NCBI RefSeq assembly: GCF_902713615.1
Contig: NC_052168.1
Location: 5,580,001-5,644,000 of the forward strand
Length of the DNA: 64,000 bases
Reading direction: 5' to 3'
Origin: Scyliorhinus canicula
Taxonomy: Eukaryota
Made by a program: the position numbers and the translations under genes. The notes below the pieces were generated by a model that saw nothing but the letters and a program-made list of their open reading frames with translations, was not told the origin of the DNA and did no database searches. This document shows positions 2,257-58,200 of this stretch, piece by piece (position 1 is the stretch's first letter; every line of letters starts with the position of its first letter).

Positions 2257-2854
2257 GGATCTTATGGTTATTACAGAATTCAATTCCCATGGATGCGATG
2301 GGGCTGAGACGTTGCCCATAAAGAGGGACCACTCTGCCATAAGTGAAGCTGGTACACACATCGGGAGGTCATTATCACTGAAGACAATGGACGTGAGTGC
2401 AGGCCGTGTGTGTGAGGGGGGCAACTGGTCAGATTCAATGCCAATTTCCCACCAGCAAGTTTAGAAAGAAAGAATTGCATTTATATAGAGCCTTTCACAA
2501 TCTCAGGATGTCCCAGAGTGCTGCACAGCCAATGAACTACGTTCGAAGCATAGTCACTGTTGTAACGTGGGAAATGCACAGTAAGCTCCCACGAAATTCA
2601 GCATGACAATGGCCAGATCATCGGTTTGTACGTTGTTGGTTGAGGGATGAATGTTGGCCCGGACATGGACGGGGGATGGGGGACGGGGGTCGGGGGAGGG
2701 GCGTGGGATCTCCCCTGCTCTTCTCCCAAGTAGTCCCCATGGGATCGTTAACAGCCTCCTGAGCGAGTAGACCTTGGTTCAATGTTTCATCCGACAGACG
2801 GCATCTCTTGACAGTGCAGCACTCTCTCAGCGTCAGCCTGGATTTAGGTTACAA

Positions 2855-3417
2855 CTAGACGTGAATGTAGGAGGGTTGATCAGTAAGTTCGTGGATGATA
2901 CAAACCTTAATGGGGGGATAAATAGTGATGAGGGTAGCTTTAGATTACAGGAGCATAAAGACGGGCTGGTCAGATGGGCTGATCAGTGGCAAATGGAATT
3001 CAATCGGGATAAGTGTGAGGTGATGCACTTGGGCAGGGCAAACAAGAAAATATGTGATAAACGGCAAGACCCTGGGGTGGTGATATGCATAAAGCAATTC
3101 TGAACATAATATTAAACACAACCTCTGACCACTAGGTGGCAGTGTAAACCCACCACCTGTCCCTGGGCCTGGGGAGTTGGGAGTAAGTCGTGTTGGAGGA
3201 TAGACGTATTTTGCAGTCGCTCTATAGCAGTTAGTGAGGGTTAGTAGTTTATTATTTTATTGATCCTAGTTATCGTTATCACCCAGTTGTTTTATAATAA
3301 ATTATTTAAACTAGATGTTCTGTAGCTCATCATTCATATCGGCCAGTGTACAGAACATGACGCTTGGGAATCACCGAGGATCAGAGGGACGTTGGTGTGC
3401 ACAAACACTGGTCCCTT
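2855..3417 (+). mobile_element. CR1 LINE RT fragment, host of a solo LTR and the R2-like insertion; resumes at 4629-4661
   Basis: ISKFVDDT...WADQWQMEFNRDKCEVMHLGR peptide, then CR1-type QRDxGV...SL sequence that continues as (V)AEQV...VVKK after 4628. Confidence 0.9.
3078..3362 (+). mobile_element. Probable solo LTR inserted in CR1, carrying a CTCF-like motif
   Basis: Interrupts CR1 coding sequence; begins TG; AATAAA near 3296; CCACTAGGTGGCAG at 3129-3142. Confidence 0.5.
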
Positions 3418-3649
3418 CGGGAGTAACTATGACTCTCTTAACGAGGATGGGAGTCTCCGACGCGTCCTGGCTACGCCGATGTTAGTTGGATTCTACCCAG
3501 GAGACTGGGTCTGTTCATAGTTACAGTAACCACGGGAATCTTACCCTAAGCACCTATTCTATACCGTGGTGAGTTGCGCCTCCACGTCGGTCCCGCCGGG
3601 CAACGGTTCCTATGAAGGGGTAGAGATGGAGGAACCGGCTAAAGCAACT
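3418..3649 (+). ncRNA. HDV-like (R2-type) self-cleaving ribozyme
   Basis: P1 (GG)CGGG 3418-3421 / CCCGCC 3592-3597; P2 AGTTGC 3572-3577 / GCAACT 3644-3649; P3 GCC 3578-3580 / GGT 3589-3591; L3 TCCACGTC; P1.1 CC/GG; P4 CGGTTCCT 3604-3611 / AGGAACCG 3630-3637; J4/2 GCTAAA with catalytic C3639. Confidence 0.88.
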
Positions 3650-4628
3650 GGTCGAGAATTTTCGGCCGATAGAAATAAGCGTGTGCATGGTACAGAGGCC
3701 TACATGTTGGGTGACCAATATGGAGGTAACCATGCTAGTAGTTGCAGGAATCTGCTGGTTCTTTACTGCAATGAGTCGCACCTCAGCGATGGGGGCACGC
3801 GCTGTTCGACGACCTCCTGATTTATCAGATTGGTTGCACACATGTCGACTGGCCGAGACCAGCAAAACCATGCTAGTACCCTCGTCCGCAAAATTTTAAA
3901 AAAGTTTGATCTTCGGATGGTGCGTGTTCCGACGCGTCCTGGCTACGCCGATGTTAGTTGGACACCACCCAAGTGACGAGGGGAGCGCATGATGCCTTTT
4001 ACCATTCTGAGGATGACGGCCCGAATGGGCAAACTTCAATGCCCAAGACCCAGCTGACGTCCGGGAGGTCGGAACGAGGTCGGAACACGGACAAGTGCTC
4101 GGATACGTCTCGACTGCCCTTCGTTGGTTGGCCTTGGTGGTGGAACGTAGTAGGGTTCTGGCGAACCCATAGAACATTGAATTTGACATTCGGTATCATC
4201 TGTCTGAACCCCGAAGGGCCGGGTGACGACGGGTGAATGACCTCTCCCGGGATGTGCGAGAGGGACAGTTACGCCTAATATGTATGTGAAGCTCGCGGTT
4301 GTTGTTATATTAATGTGTGTGTGAAATAAAAATCCTATTGTGATCAAATGATGATCGTCATTCTGTACCTGCGGGTCAGATGACACAAAGGGTTGGCCGT
4401 CTCCGGACAGACTTAAATACATCTAACCGGTTCTCAGCTCACATTTGGTGGGTGGTGACACCACGCTTGGTATCCCGCGGAATTAAAGGTCATTTTATAC
4501 TGAATCAATTAAGATCACCCCGGTCCACCAACACAGTTCCGGCTGTGGTCACTTGCTAAGGTGGTAGTACAAATCGTCGACGAGCGACGTAAAGACTCGG
4601 AATTGGCACTCTCCGGAGTGTGGTTAAA
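3418..4628 (+). mobile_element. Non-autonomous R2-retrotransposon-derived element (SIDE-like) with 28S-derived 5' leader
   Basis: CGGGAGTAACTATGACTCTCTTAA (28S up to the R2 site) at 3418-3441; HDV-like ribozyme; 3' end GGTTAAA followed by TAGC; cleanly interrupts a CR1 reading frame; no RT ORF. Confidence 0.8.
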
Positions 4629-5106
4629 TAGCAGAGCAGGTGGGAAAGTGGTTAAGAAGGCCCGCTCAGTTAGGGGTTGTCAATCCACTTCAGGATAGGC
4701 CTCCAGGATACAGCTGTGTGCACAACCCTGGAGGGAAATCATTCGGACATTAAAAAATGTATGCTTTTATCATATTCTTTGAACATTTCTCTTTACCACA
4801 CATTAAAAACCTTAAAAATGGGGGGGGAAAAAGGCAGTTGTAGCTTTGACCACCTGCCTCTGCTACCCTCCCACTCTGTCACCCCCCCCCCCCCCACCCC
4901 CATTCCCACCACGCCTTCTCCCCACAATCACCCCCCCCCCCCCCCGGCCCCCCCCCCCCCCCCCCCCCCCCCCCCGGCCCCCCCCCCCCCCCCCCATCCC
5001 TTAACAAGGGAAAACTACACAGTATAAAACCTGGGACCTGGTCGGGGAGAATGACCCTTCGGGAAGAGGAGCAATAGTTTGGTTGTGTCTGTGTACACCG
5101 TAATAA

Positions 5107-5290
5107 GGGGCTGTTTAGCACACTGGGCTAAATCGCTGGCTTTGAAAGCAGACCAAGGCAGGCCAGCACCACGGTTCAATTCCCGTACCGGCCTCCCCGA
5201 ACAGGCGCCGGAATGTGGCGACTAGGGGCTTTTCACAGTAACTTCATTGAAGCCTACTCGAATTTCATTTCATTCATTTTCGTTCATTCA
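5107..5290 (+). mobile_element. Short tRNA-derived SINE (representative; also ~14330, 19401, 20205, 25380, 33047, 40612, 47962, 60008)
   Basis: GGGGCTGTTTAGCAC head, B-box-like GGTTCAATTCCC, shared CCGAACAGGCGCCGGAATGTGGCGACTAGGGG body and TTTCA tail. Confidence 0.85.
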
Positions 5291-25317: not shown

Positions 25318-27190
25318 TTCCGGGGTCCGTATCCCTCTATTCCCATCCTATTCACATATTCATCAAGGTGTATCTTAAATGGAATGAAATGAAAATCGCT
25401 TATTGTCACGAGTAGGCTTCAATGAAGTTACTGTGAAAAGCCCCTAGTCGCCACATTCCGGCGCCTGTCCGGGGAGGCTGGTACGGGAAGCGAACCGTGC
25501 TGCTGGCCTGCTTTGGTCTGCTTTAAAAGCCAGCGATTTAGCCCAGTGAGCTAAACCAGCCCCTGGTCGCTATCACATCTGCTTCCACCATCTCCCTTGG
25601 CAGCACGTCCTAGGCACTCAACACCCTCTGTGTAAAAAGCTTCCCTCGCGCATCTCCGCTAAACTTTCCCCCTCAAACCTATGGCCCCTTTTCCACCCTG
25701 GGAAAAAGCGTCTGACTCTCCACTCTATCCGTGCCTCCCATAATCTTGTAGACCTCTATCAGGTCGCCCCTCAATCTTCGCAGTTCCAGTGAAAACAGTC
25801 CCAGTTCATCCAAACTCTCCTCATAGCTAATGCCCTCCAGACCAGGCAACATCCTGGTAAACCTCTTCTGCACCCTCTCCAAAGCCTCCACATCATCTGG
25901 TAGTGTGGCGACCAGAATTGAACTCTATACTCCAAGTTTGGCCTAACTAAGGTTCTATACAGCTGCATCATGTCATGCCAATTTTTATATTCAATGCCTC
26001 GGCCGATGAAGGCAAGCATGCCGTCTGCCTTCTTGACTACCTTCTCCTTGACTACCTGCGTTGCCACTTTCAGTGACCTGTGGACCTGTATGCACAGTTC
26101 TCTCTACCTATCATTATGCCTAAGGGTTCTGCCATTTACTGTATATTTCCCACCTGTATTAGACCTTCCAAAATGCATTACCTCACATTTGTCCAGATTA
26201 AACTCCATCTGCCATCTCTCCGCCCAAGTCTCCAAATGATCTAAATCCTGCTGTATCCTCTGACAGTCCTCATCACTATCTGCAATTGCACCTACCTTTG
26301 TGTCGTCTGCAAATTTACTATTCAGACCAGTTACATTTTCCTCCAAATCATTTATACAAACAACAAAGGTCCCAGCACTGATCCCTGTGGAACACCACTA
26401 GTCACAGCCCTCCATTCAGAAATACATCCTTCCACTGTTACCCTCTTTCTTCTATGACCGACCCAGTTCTGTATCCATCTTGCCAGCTCACCTCAATATG
26501 ACTTTCCCTTGTGTATCAGTCTGTCATGAGGGACCTTGTCAAAGGCCTTACTGAAGTCCATGTAGACAACATCCACTGACCTACTTGCATCAACCATCTT
26601 CGTCACTTCCTTGAAACACGTGATCAAATTAGTGAGACACAACCTCCCCTTCACAAAACCATGCTGTCTATTTTGAATAAGTGCATTTGTTTCCAAATGT
26701 GAGTAAATCCTGTCCCTGAGAATCTTCTCCAATAATTTCCCTACCACTGACAGAAGGCTCAGCGGCCTGTAATGTCCTGGATTATCCCTCCTACCTTTTT
26801 AAACAAAGGAACAACATTGGCAATACTCCATTCCTCTGGGCTCTCATCTGCAGCCAATAAGGATACAAAGATTACTGTCAAAGCCCCAGCAATTCCTTCC
26901 CTTGCCTCCCTCAGTGTTCTGGGGTAGATCCCATCAGGCCCTGGGGACTTATCTACCGTAATGCTTTTTTAAGACGCCCAATACCTCCTCCCGTTTGATA
27001 CCAACATGACCCAGACTATCTACTCCCCCTTCCCCAGACTCATCATCCACCAAGTCTTTCTCTTTGGTGAACACTGATGCAAAGTATCCAATCAGTACCT
27101 CGCCCATTTTCTCTGGCTCCAAGCATAGATTCCCTCCCCTGTCCTTGAGTGGGCCAACCCTCTCCCTGGCCACCCACCTGCTTCTTGGTG
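25318..27190 (-). mobile_element. CR1 LINE ORF2 (RT) fragment, degenerate
   Basis: [62 protein letters not shown] peptides. Confidence 0.95.
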
Positions 27191-31800: not shown

Positions 31801-32592
31801 TCACTGCCACTCAGGACTCTGTGTTCCTGTTATTATCTCCAATTTTGCTAAGTTCAGTTCCCTCAAGTTGCTGAGTCACTCTGAGTAACACGTCATTCCA
31901 GTTTGCAATGTCACATTGTTGAAATGTCAGGAAGATTCTATTTGATTTGGCAATTCTGGGTGCATCAGCAGCGCAATTGTTTTCGTGGCCTAGCAATTTC
32001 TTTTAAAAATTCAAAACCTGTGGACGCCTTCACGCTGAGCTTATGGTTCCCACAGAGGCCGGTACAGACTGCCCCTCAGTTGCAGAAGGTGAGTCAACCC
32101 GCACCGCTGGCAACGGGAGGTAATCACCGCCATTGACATCTTGCACCAGAGTCCCGGGCGCCACTTTGCTCCTCTGCCCAGCCTGTACTGTTCTGTCGTT
32201 CTTGGTGTCTGAAGGTGGCAATGCGACGTGTACCCGCAAGCCTGTGGCCAGTATGGGGGAGGCGGATATAAGACGGGACGAGTGCAGAAGGTGATGTGCA
32301 GAGTGTGAGCAGCACTTTCATGAAATCTTTCACCCTTACGCAATAGGCTTTTGTTATTACAGATCCTCCCAGGCAGACTGTCTAAAAACACGTCAGCAAT
32401 GAGTCATTGCCAGTAACTGCCGACACTGACTGTGCAATTTTTGTGTCGGCTCCAGCTGTTCTACAGAACGCAATGTTAAAACATTTTAGCTAAAATCTAA
32501 CCACGTTTGTTTCAGAATCAGTTCCTATATCTGTGCAGTGTGTCAATTAAGGGGCAACAATTTCCTCCCATTCAGCCCATTTATATCTCATA

Positions 32593-55200: not shown

Positions 55201-58200
55201 GCTGGGACAGGGCTGAGATTTATACTGTTGTGGGGGAGGCGCGAGCAGTCGGGGCAAATCATGACTCGCTGCCTTAAATTTCTTTAATCTTCATCTACCC
55301 CTCTGTTTCTTTCTTTAATTATCTTAAATCTGTGTCATCCGGTTACCGGCCCTCCCACCAGTGAAATAGTTTCTCCTCATCTATTCCACCCAAACGTCTC
55401 ATCAATTTTAAACACAAGAGATTATTGTGCAAGATTAAAGCGCATGGGATTGGGGGAAGTGTACTGAGGTGGATAGAAAACTGGTTGGCAGAGAGGAAAC
55501 AAAGAGTAGGAATTAATGGGTCCTTTTCAAATTGGAAGGCAGTAACTAGTGAGGTGCCACAGGGATCGGTGCTGGGACCCCAGCTATTCACATTACATAT
55601 TAATGATTTGGATGAGGGACCAAAAAAAGTAACATCTCAAAGTTTGCAGATGATACCAAGTTGGGTGGGATGGTGAACTGTGACGTGGATGCAGAGATCC
55701 TACAGCATGATCTGGACAGGTTGGGCGAGTGGGCAAGTCAATGGCAGATGCAGTATAATTTGGATAAGTGTGAGGTAATTCACTTTGGAAGCAAAAACAG
55801 GAAGGCAGATTACTACCTGAATCGTTGTAAATTGGGAGAGGGGGCGTGTGCAGCGAGACCTGGGTGTCCTTGTGCACCAGTCGCTGAAGGTAAGCATGCA
55901 GGAGCAGCAGGCGGTAAAGTATGCTGGCCTTCATTGCGAGAGGTTTCGAGTATAGAAGCAGGGATGTGTTACTGCAATTATACAGGGCCTTGGTGGGGCC
56001 ACACCTAGAATATTGTGTGCAGTTTTGGTCTCCTTCTCTGAGGAAGGATGTTCTTGCTCTCGAGGGAGTGCAGCGAAGGTTTACCAGACTGATTCCAGGG
56101 ATGGCGGGACTGTCACATGACGAGAGATTGACTAGGTTAGGATTGTTCTCGCTGGAGTTCAGAAGAATGAGGACAGACTTATAAAATTCTAACAGGACTA
56201 GACAGGGTAGATGCAGGGAAGATGTTCCCGATGGTGGGTGTGTCTAGAACCAGGGGTCACAGTCTGAGGATTCAGGGTAAACCATTTCGGACAGAGATGA
56301 GGAGACATTTCTTCACCGAAAGTGTGGTGAGCCTTTGGAATTCATTACCACAGGAAGTAGTTGATGCTAAAACATTGAATATATTCAAGAGGCGGCTGGA
56401 TATAACACTTGGGGAGAATGGGATCAAAGGTTCTGGGGAGAAAGCAGGATTAGGCTATTGAGTTGGATGAACAGCCATGATCGTGATGAACGGCGGAGCA
56501 GGCTCGAAGGGCCAAAAGGCCTCCTCCTGCTCCTATCTGCTAGGTATCTATGTAACGTCGATCATATCCACGCAGAACCTTTTCTGCTTTTAAGGTTGGT
56601 AAATTTATACATAAAATCTGGGTGGTCAAGGTTTGGCGAGATTCGCGCAACTCACAGAATGATCATCCTGGTCGGACGCCAGTTTGTGTAGGTCCAGGAT
56701 ACACTGGTTCACTTCCTTCTCCAGGTGCAGGGCCTGTTCCATCGCCTCTAAGCCGTTGCCCCATTCGTCCTGTTTGGGTTTCTGGAAATAAAGGCAAAGT
56801 GGCTCACTGGAGCTGAAGGACATTTCGTAACGTTGGGCGAAGCGGGTGGGAAGGGAAAGCAAAGGGGACGGAGAGATCTCCCTCCCGCTAACCTTGATGT
56901 CCTTGAGGATGATGCGACCTCCGCGCAGATTCTGAAACTTCATCAGCTTCGCAGCATGTTCCTGCTCCTCGAGCGACTGCTCCAAGTAAAACTTGGCAAA
57001 GTTCCTCAGAGCGATATCATCCCGCTCGAAGTAGTAGGCCTGAAGCAGAGAAGACAAGGGAGTGACGACGGGACTCAGGGCACCCTCGCTTCCACGGCGC
57101 GCACCCTCCCGACACGAACGTACTTCATTTCAACCATTCACTGCCGAACACGATTGCTGAGCAACGTGTCGCCACGGGGACCCCTTCGGCCCTTCAAAAT
57201 GCTATCCCACAACATCTTCTCAGGACAAATAAGAATGGCTAAGGGTCAGCTGTGCCTCAGTGGGTAACCCTCTTACCTGACTTCGAAGGTTGTGGGTTTC
57301 CACACACTCCAGAGAGGTGACGCTCCTCTTGTAGTTTGGAGCACCGCATTGTTGTGAGACACGAAACCGAGGTGGAATTAAAAGATGCAATAGCGCTACT
57401 TTGAAGAGCATGAGAGTTATCCCTGGTGCCCTGGCTAATATATATCCCTTAACCAAAATCACTAAAACAAATTCAGATGATATAGTCTTTCTCTCATTGA
57501 TGTTTGTGTAAGCTTGCTGTATGCAAGTTGGCTGGCGCGCTCCCTAATGGTCAGTGGTGACTAAACCTCAGGAAAGTACTTAATTGGCTGGAAGTGCTTT
57601 GGGGATATCCTGAGGATGGGAAAGAGTCTATATAAATGCAAGTTCTTTCTTTAACAATGGAAGGGCAGGGTTAGCCCTGCTGCCTCACGGCGCCGAGGTC
57701 CCAGGTTCGATCCCGGCTCTGGGTCACTGTCCGTATGGAGTTCGCACATTCTCCCCGTGTCTGCGTGGGTTTCACCCCCACAACCCAAAGGTGTGCAGGT
57801 TAGGTGGATTGGCCAGGCTAAATTGCCCCTTAATTGGAAAAAAAAAATAATTGGGTACTCTAAATTTATAAAAAAAAACAATGGAAGTGCCTATGTAAAC
57901 ATGTCACACTGCTGTTACATCCTCCTGCCACTGGAGGCTCTGCATCTCCGTAGGCAGAAGGGTGTATGTACAACATGACGGGCTTACATACCTTATAAAC
58001 AGGACATCGACCTGGGAGGAATGTGAGTTGATGTAACAATCTGAGGAAGTTCCCCTTGCAATTAAGGACATTACATTTTCCTTCCACATCTCTTGCTGAT
58101 TCTTGTACAAGGACATCCAGATCCCTCTGCATTTTAGCAGTCTCTCATTAGTTAAATAATAGTTTGCTTTTCTGCCAAAGTGGCCCAGCTCATATTTTCC

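Follow-up and report, generated by a model that had tools for sequence, protein, structure and literature searches.

A non-autonomous R2 derivative within a decayed LINE copy of Scyliorhinus canicula, probably inserted off target at a 28S-like site

How does an R2 derivative that starts with a piece of 28S rRNA come to lie inside the remains of a LINE reverse transcriptase? The question is raised by a locus of Scyliorhinus canicula, analyzed here within a stretch of 64,000 nucleotides (contig NC_052168.1, positions 5,580,001 to 5,644,000; henceforth the window), in which a 1.2-kb non-coding R2 derivative at 3418–4628 sits inside a decayed CR1-like reverse-transcriptase fragment. A preliminary description had taken it for a natural off-target R2 insertion at a 28S-like site, a reading that the 28S leader, the core likeness of the site to 28S and the R2-type 3′ end all bear out. 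Read 5′ to 3′, the locus passes from ...CAC TGG TCC CTT (to 3417) into the 28S leader, then through a body closing on ...GGTTAAA (to 4628), and returns to the LINE with TAGCAGAGCAGGTG from 4629. Its features are as follows (target positions are counted from the bottom-strand nick of R2 in 28S).

2774–3076, + strand: upstream part of the host CR1-like LINE reverse-transcriptase fragment, an open reading frame with the motif FVDDT...WQMEFNRDKCEV
3077–3364, no strand assigned, bounds approximate and taken from contig breaks: unrelated, very abundant repeat, an earlier insert in the host LINE copy
3365–3417, + strand: left flank, LINE reverse-transcriptase fragment by translation (LGITEDQRDVGVHKHWSL), closing on TCC CTT (Ser-Leu), which is target −10 to −5
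3418–3441, + strand: 28S rRNA leader, target positions −26 to −3 (CGGGAGTAACTATGACTCTCTTAA), 24 nt, exact, carried on the element RNA
3442–4628, + strand: non-coding, SIDE-like, R2-derived body of about 1.19 kb, ending in ...GGTTAAA
3456–3505, + strand: first copy of a 50-nt direct repeat, from a repeat search
3928–3977, + strand: second copy of the 50-nt direct repeat, 90% identical to the first; public contigs break at both
4606–4628, + strand: predicted 3′ terminal hairpin (4606–4621) followed by the single-stranded A-rich tail GGUUAAA, from a fold with a weak z of −1.67
4629–4632, + strand: TAGC, target +1 to +4, common to 28S and to the host LINE copy (Val GTA and Ala GCA codons)
4629–4661, + strand: right flank, LINE reverse-transcriptase fragment by translation ((V)AEQV-G/E-KVVKKA), aligned to the related copies L001, L002 and L007

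The host copy is a fragment of a large family. The 2774–3076 segment matches Pfam RVT_1 at E 0.001, as a fragment and under the curated cut-off, and its protein is 54–57% identical to those of two further window copies; the CR1 label is tentative and follows from likeness to the chicken CR1 motif, Pfam showing RVT_1 fragments. At the earlier insert, paralogous contigs jump some 318–330 nt between 3046 and 3365–3377, with about 30 other LINE letters instead, and many contigs stop at 3361, with continuations unlike the window. The alignment of the left flank to L001, L002 and L007 extends to the Leu codon, and the LINE resumes after the element as TAGCAGAGCAGGTGGGAAAGTGGTTAAGAAGGCC, so that the host copy reads RDVGVHKHWSL, the insertion, and then (V)AEQV; one other window copy reads RELCIQVHRSLKVATQ. 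After 4643 the host copy has lost 1 nt, most paralogous contigs having an extra A there, and this loss causes the frameshift in (V)AEQVGK-VVKKA. A word search yielded 67 related ORF fragments, which share DLGVQVHRSLKVAxQVEKVVKKA...LVRPHLEY, and the S, L, K and V of SLKVA are invariant in a 31-sequence alignment wherever the region is present. Within the window, the copy near 26076 (minus strand) reads TCA CTG AAA GTG GCA ACG CAG (SLKVATQ) and that at 55881 reads CTG AAG GTA AGC, which agrees with the readings first quoted for copies near 26060 and 55880. For codon counts we used eight related copies, namely seven loci from six fragments (L005 and L006 encode the same protein and were counted once) together with these two window copies, and over these eight the consensus is TCA CTG AAA GTG GCA A. 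A nucleotide BLAST search with the flanks found no paralogs in the window, the copies surfacing only in the protein-level search, and of 57 patterns matched when metagenomes were scanned for further LINE copies, 0 were confirmed. Two NCBI proteins labelled Proteus mirabilis (P0039 and P0044) are 66–67% identical to the window copy and contain HRSLKVATQ; they are fragments of this vertebrate LINE family and probably stem from host-DNA contamination of bacterial assemblies.

Against these relatives the state of the site before insertion can be reconstructed. In a single reading frame, the two flanks run collinear with both window copies and with L001–L007 (RDxGVxxHxSL-K-V-A/S-xQ). Local alignment to L002 and L007 shows that exactly 4 nt are absent between them, AAR G, being the Lys codon and the first base of the Val codon, as had been proposed when the joined flanks were first described as lacking four nucleotides. 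We relied on codon collinearity and local pairwise alignment here, a MAFFT nucleotide alignment of the joined flanks having misplaced the gap. The pre-insertion site is thus soundly reconstructed as TCCCTT-AARG/TAGCAG (R being A or G, and the slash, here and below, the nick), with bases −4 to −1 predicted from the relatives. The Lys codon is AAA in seven of the eight related copies and AAG in one. The initial count of 13 of 16 matches to 28S, made for AAGG, is arithmetically correct for AAG; since seven of eight relatives have AAA, 12/16 is the likelier score. Among the contigs listed from low-coverage public runs, none has a 3417-to-4629 joint or the empty site.

The features of the element itself identify its origin. 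Numbered as in PMC10499050 (A−31ACGGCGGGA−22, with the RASIN motif TAAGG/TA), the leader covers −26 to −3, and a 23-nt 28S string from it occurs a single time in the window, with 0 occurrences expected by chance and 0 hits in 100 shuffles. It is without the two nucleotides GG at −28 and −27, and the copy therefore begins 2 nt inside the expected 5′ end of the RNA. At the other end, the junction reads ...GGTTAAA/TAGC, with the bottom-strand nick position falling just before 4629. Target-site duplication and poly(A) are absent, as is a CR1-type 3′ tail; the published R2Tg junction, ...GATAAA/TAGCC, has the same form. An A-rich tract that enters the reverse transcriptase active site is known for the 3′ UTRs of R2Bm and R2Tg (PMC12222951). 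According to the ORF list, 3418–4628 contains no ORF of more than 128 aa, none that is RT-like and no endonuclease ORF, so the element is non-autonomous and must depend on protein supplied in trans; the single ORF with zinc-finger/Myb, RT and RLE endonuclease domains by which an autonomous R2 is recognized is lacking. The 50-nt direct repeat is the sole internal repeat found in the repeat search. Judged on its sequence features, namely the leader, the ribozyme layout detailed below and the 3′ junction, the element belongs to the R2 lineage as a non-autonomous derivative of SIDE type. R2 elements of the A and D lineages are present in Chondrichthyes (PMC13188248). Four of its ORFs, when looked up, were not on record, a metagenome scan for its 3′ end gave 0 hits, and the supplements of a 2026 R2 survey held none of four diagnostic strings.

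R2 ribozymes most often pair their P1 with 28S −28 to −22 and cut at −28, leaving on the RNA a 28-nt 28S leader that later anneals to the target (PMC3774820). A candidate for such a ribozyme is found in the 5′ part of the body, with the following parts, all on the + strand.

3572–3649: putative HDV-like ribozyme core, located by a script from positions and complementarity
3572–3577 and 3644–3649: putative P2, AGTTGC and GCAACT, also recovered in the MFE fold
3579–3585: putative L3, CCTCCAC
3591–3597: putative P1′, TCCCGCC, directly after L3 and the exact complement of GGCGGGA at 28S −28 to −22
3598–3599: putative P1.1, GG, followed by GCAAC
3605–3610 and 3631–3636: putative P4, GGTTCC and GGAACC
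3637–3639: GGC with the putative catalytic C

This HDV-like layout, in which the P1 strand would be supplied by 28S, agrees with that of PMC3774820. An Rfam search of 3200–4900 with E up to 1 returned no match, neither to a ribozyme nor to a 3′ UTR structure; for the ribozyme this is expected, since its P1 strand lies 170 nt from the core and is out of reach for the HDV model.

How closely, then, does the site resemble the 28S target? The observed bases alone (−10 to −5 and +1 to +4) match 28S at nine of ten positions. Among the 127,970 16-mers on both strands of the window, 0 reach 13/16 and 2 reach 12/16, one being the LINE copy at 55881 and the other lying at 32206; the LINE copy at 26076 scores 11/16. 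Shuffling gives an expectation of 0.34 matches of 13/16 or better per window, and in-register matches of at least 12/16 turn up in the window at about 1.6e-5 per position. The likeness of the reconstructed site to 28S is far beyond chance. Its source appears to be the protein that the LINE encodes: the 28S target TCT CTT AAG GTA GCC, put in the LINE frame, reads S-L-K-V-A, and the SLKVA motif fixes 10 of these 15 bases, all first and second codon positions, so that the wobble bases alone vary. Thus the site mimics 28S because conserved SLKVA codons of the LINE coincide with the 28S target. The match at 32206–32221 (TGTCTGAAGGTGGCAA), the only other 12/16 match that lies outside a LINE, was rejected as a chance near-site, its context being not RT-like.

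The likeness is restricted to −10 to +4, a 14-bp core around the nick. Further upstream (−31 to −11) 7 of 21 positions match 28S and downstream (+5 to +27) 8 of 23, both at chance level, as is the match over −34 to −20, the upstream region read by R2 proteins. In vitro, R2Bm needs the upstream RUM motif A−31WWWGCNNNA−22 (PMC10499050), although this is the motif of the silkmoth protein and may not be that of the shark's; here G−27, C−26 and A−22 are not all present, and the bases contacted by R2Tg (−25 to −20) are not reproduced either. Nearer the nick, the RASIN of R2Bm requires T−6, T−5, A−3 and T+1 (T−6 T−5 N A−3 N N / T+1; PMC10499050), of which T−6, T−5 and T+1 are observed here and A−3 is predicted from all eight related copies.

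In this respect the host copy differs from its relatives. It has T at −5 (Leu CTT), where all eight have G, and A at +2 (Val GTA), shared by two of the eight (L007 reads GTAGCA) and unlike the other six; both changes go towards 28S. The LINE consensus, at 11/16, carries G at −5, where R2Bm needs T, and on this account the consensus copies would be near-misses and not ready-made R2 sites. The proposal that CR1 copies offer cryptic R2 sites thus holds insofar as SLKVA fixes 10 of 15 target bases and fails insofar as the consensus stays at 11/16 without T−5. The SLKVA segment of this abundant LINE family might keep near-cognate R2 targets in permanent supply, each needing a substitution or two to become cleavable, and so act as a secondary landing pad hit recurrently by R2 and its non-autonomous relatives. 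We rate this speculation as unlikely; if it were true, the −10 to +4 core could suffice in vivo without the upstream motif.

Copies of the element also exist elsewhere in the genome. In low-coverage DNA runs of the same species, contigs cover the element interior at multi-copy depth, and two contigs of depth about 190 from small runs of another study span 3461–3962 and 3933–4632 with 0 mismatches. The second of these, from run X13, matches through TAGC (4632) and then diverges into 21 letters unlike the window, so the abundant copies sit in a different context; together with the R2Tg junction AAA/TAGCC this confirms the placement, already made in the preliminary description, of the 3′ junction at the canonical TAGC nick. 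The leader points to master copies that would reside in 28S, a non-rDNA copy being defined as one whose element 3′ junction does not continue into TAGCCAAATG. CpG observed/expected is 1.01 in the element versus 0.53 in the window and left flank, and this value, with the 0 mismatches to the dominant copies, argues for a young insertion in an old host copy. In the four very small runs X13–X16 (about 0.2 Gb) all words of the element occur at a depth of about 190 and none of the flanks; should these be RNA libraries, expression of the element would be strong, which is what an rRNA co-transcript should show. In a related species (organism B) the interior is absent, but contigs match the ribozyme core at 3547–3623 and the last ~80 nt at 4548–4624. 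These are probably the ends of that species' own R2 elements, in which case the functional ends would be common to autonomous R2s, although an autonomous R2 with these ends did not turn up directly.

We consider it probable that the locus arose by off-target insertion, in which an R2 protein reverse transcribed a ribozyme-processed SIDE-like RNA by target-primed reverse transcription. The order of events that we infer would start with a non-autonomous, internally deleted R2 element residing at the 28S R2 site and transcribed with the rRNA, from which an HDV-like ribozyme would cut the co-transcript near −28 in 28S, such that the 28S leader stays on the RNA. The protein of an autonomous R2 would bind this RNA in trans and nick the bottom strand at the near-cognate TCCCTT-AAR-G/TAGC (site TCCCTTAAAGTAGCAG) of an old LINE copy, which would earlier have gained T at −5 and A at +2, and reverse transcription would be primed from the nick. 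The 5′ end would then be joined without homology, keeping 24 nt of the leader, losing 2 nt of it and deleting 4 bp of target; the leader would be retained, and the join be non-homologous, because at a non-rDNA site it cannot anneal upstream. R2-mediated target-primed reverse transcription fits every junction.

Other routes to the same arrangement are conceivable. R2 may have inserted into a site that had the consensus GTG, in which case the TA at 4629–4630 would be a copy of 28S sequence in the RNA tail; priming would then have used a GC microhomology two bases downstream, the target would have lost 6 bp, and the site, at 11/16, would have been weaker. Six of the eight relatives have GTG GCA, the RNAs of R2 and R1 are assumed to run into downstream 28S, such letters being sometimes co-inserted, and the frame would be preserved by a 6-nt loss too. 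We nevertheless find this course of events improbable: it requires a nick shifted by 2 nt, yet no step in the integration of R2 and R1 varies less than the bottom-strand nick, the match to a LINE contig of organism B starts at 4629 and takes in the TA, GTA exists in the LINE family (L007 and the window copy at 55881), and the host copy already carries an unambiguous change towards 28S at −5.

Insertion by other LINE machinery (CR1 or L1), or capture at a double-strand break, would make the 28S likeness coincidental. LINE enzymes do mobilize other RNAs; the locus, however, has neither target-site duplication nor poly(A) nor a CR1-type 3′ tail, its 3′ end coincides exactly with the one found in the abundant copies, and given the in-register frequency quoted above for matches of 12/16 or better we regard such a coincidence as very unlikely. 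It is less probable still that reads of an rDNA-resident copy were misjoined into the locus to give an assembly chimera. That the element has many copies and does not differ from the abundant ones, and that none of the public contigs listed spans either junction, would fit a chimera; against this, both flanks continue a single LINE copy in its reading frame with a clean 4-nt loss, and a leader clipped to 24 nt and abutting LINE sequence is not the product of a misjoin. Off-target insertion by an R2 protein thus stays our preferred reading.

Several known systems resemble the shark locus in part. In silkmoth, R2Bm and R1Bm insertions outside 28S (Xiong et al. 1988, as re-examined in PMC10499050) likewise lie outside rDNA at sites of limited 28S similarity. 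The silkmoth site keeps, like ours, the core around the nick (TTAAcG/T), and it has a RUM-like motif at the right upstream distance (PMC10499050), whereas none is seen at the shark site. The shark case also differs in its vertebrate host, in its non-autonomous element and in the 28S leader carried. Drosophila R2 SIDEs (PMC3414825) consist of a 5′ ribozyme and an R2 3′ end, have no ORF and use R2 protein in trans, as proposed here, but are described at the 28S site, whereas the shark copy lies outside rDNA and takes the P1 strand of its putative ribozyme from 28S (the −28 type). A close parallel is provided by full-length non-rDNA copies of Drosophila R1 with 7–28 bp of upstream 28S leader, the targets of which share 4–9 bp with 28S around the bottom-strand nick (PMC2718515); R1 is a different element, however, with an APE endonuclease and target-site duplications (PMC2718515), as opposed to the 4-bp deletion of the shark copy. 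Engineered R2Tg in human cells makes rare non-28S insertions with a 28S-like logo and the 3′ junction AAA/TAGCC (PMC12222951). Those cases are experimental, in human cells and with over-expressed protein, whereas the shark case would be a natural germline event. For a bearing on human genome engineering we found no support, and off-target logos of R2Tg have already been published from work in human cells, with 1,530 loci as their basis (PMC12222951).

The literature already has R2 and R1 insertions that went astray to 28S-like sites, as well as off-target logos from experiments, and the locus adds no new principle. It adds an explanation by codon mimicry, the limitation of the likeness to −10 to +4, and a LINE consensus that would be a near-miss. 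The coincidence of SLKVA codons with 28S explains the high near-target score of the LINE family and predicts which copies could be hit. As a clean natural example from a vertebrate germline, the locus would illustrate what R2 needs when the rDNA target is missed, its clipped 28S leader recording an in vivo ribozyme cut near −28 and the retention of that leader recording that annealing failed away from rDNA, in agreement with the Eickbush model.

Two observations concern the sequence downstream of the locus. We take 5085–5260 to resemble a tRNA-derived shark SINE, and ARAGORN returned no tRNA there. At 4856–4990 lie long C-rich homopolymer tracts broken by GG, at which contigs break and depth spikes.
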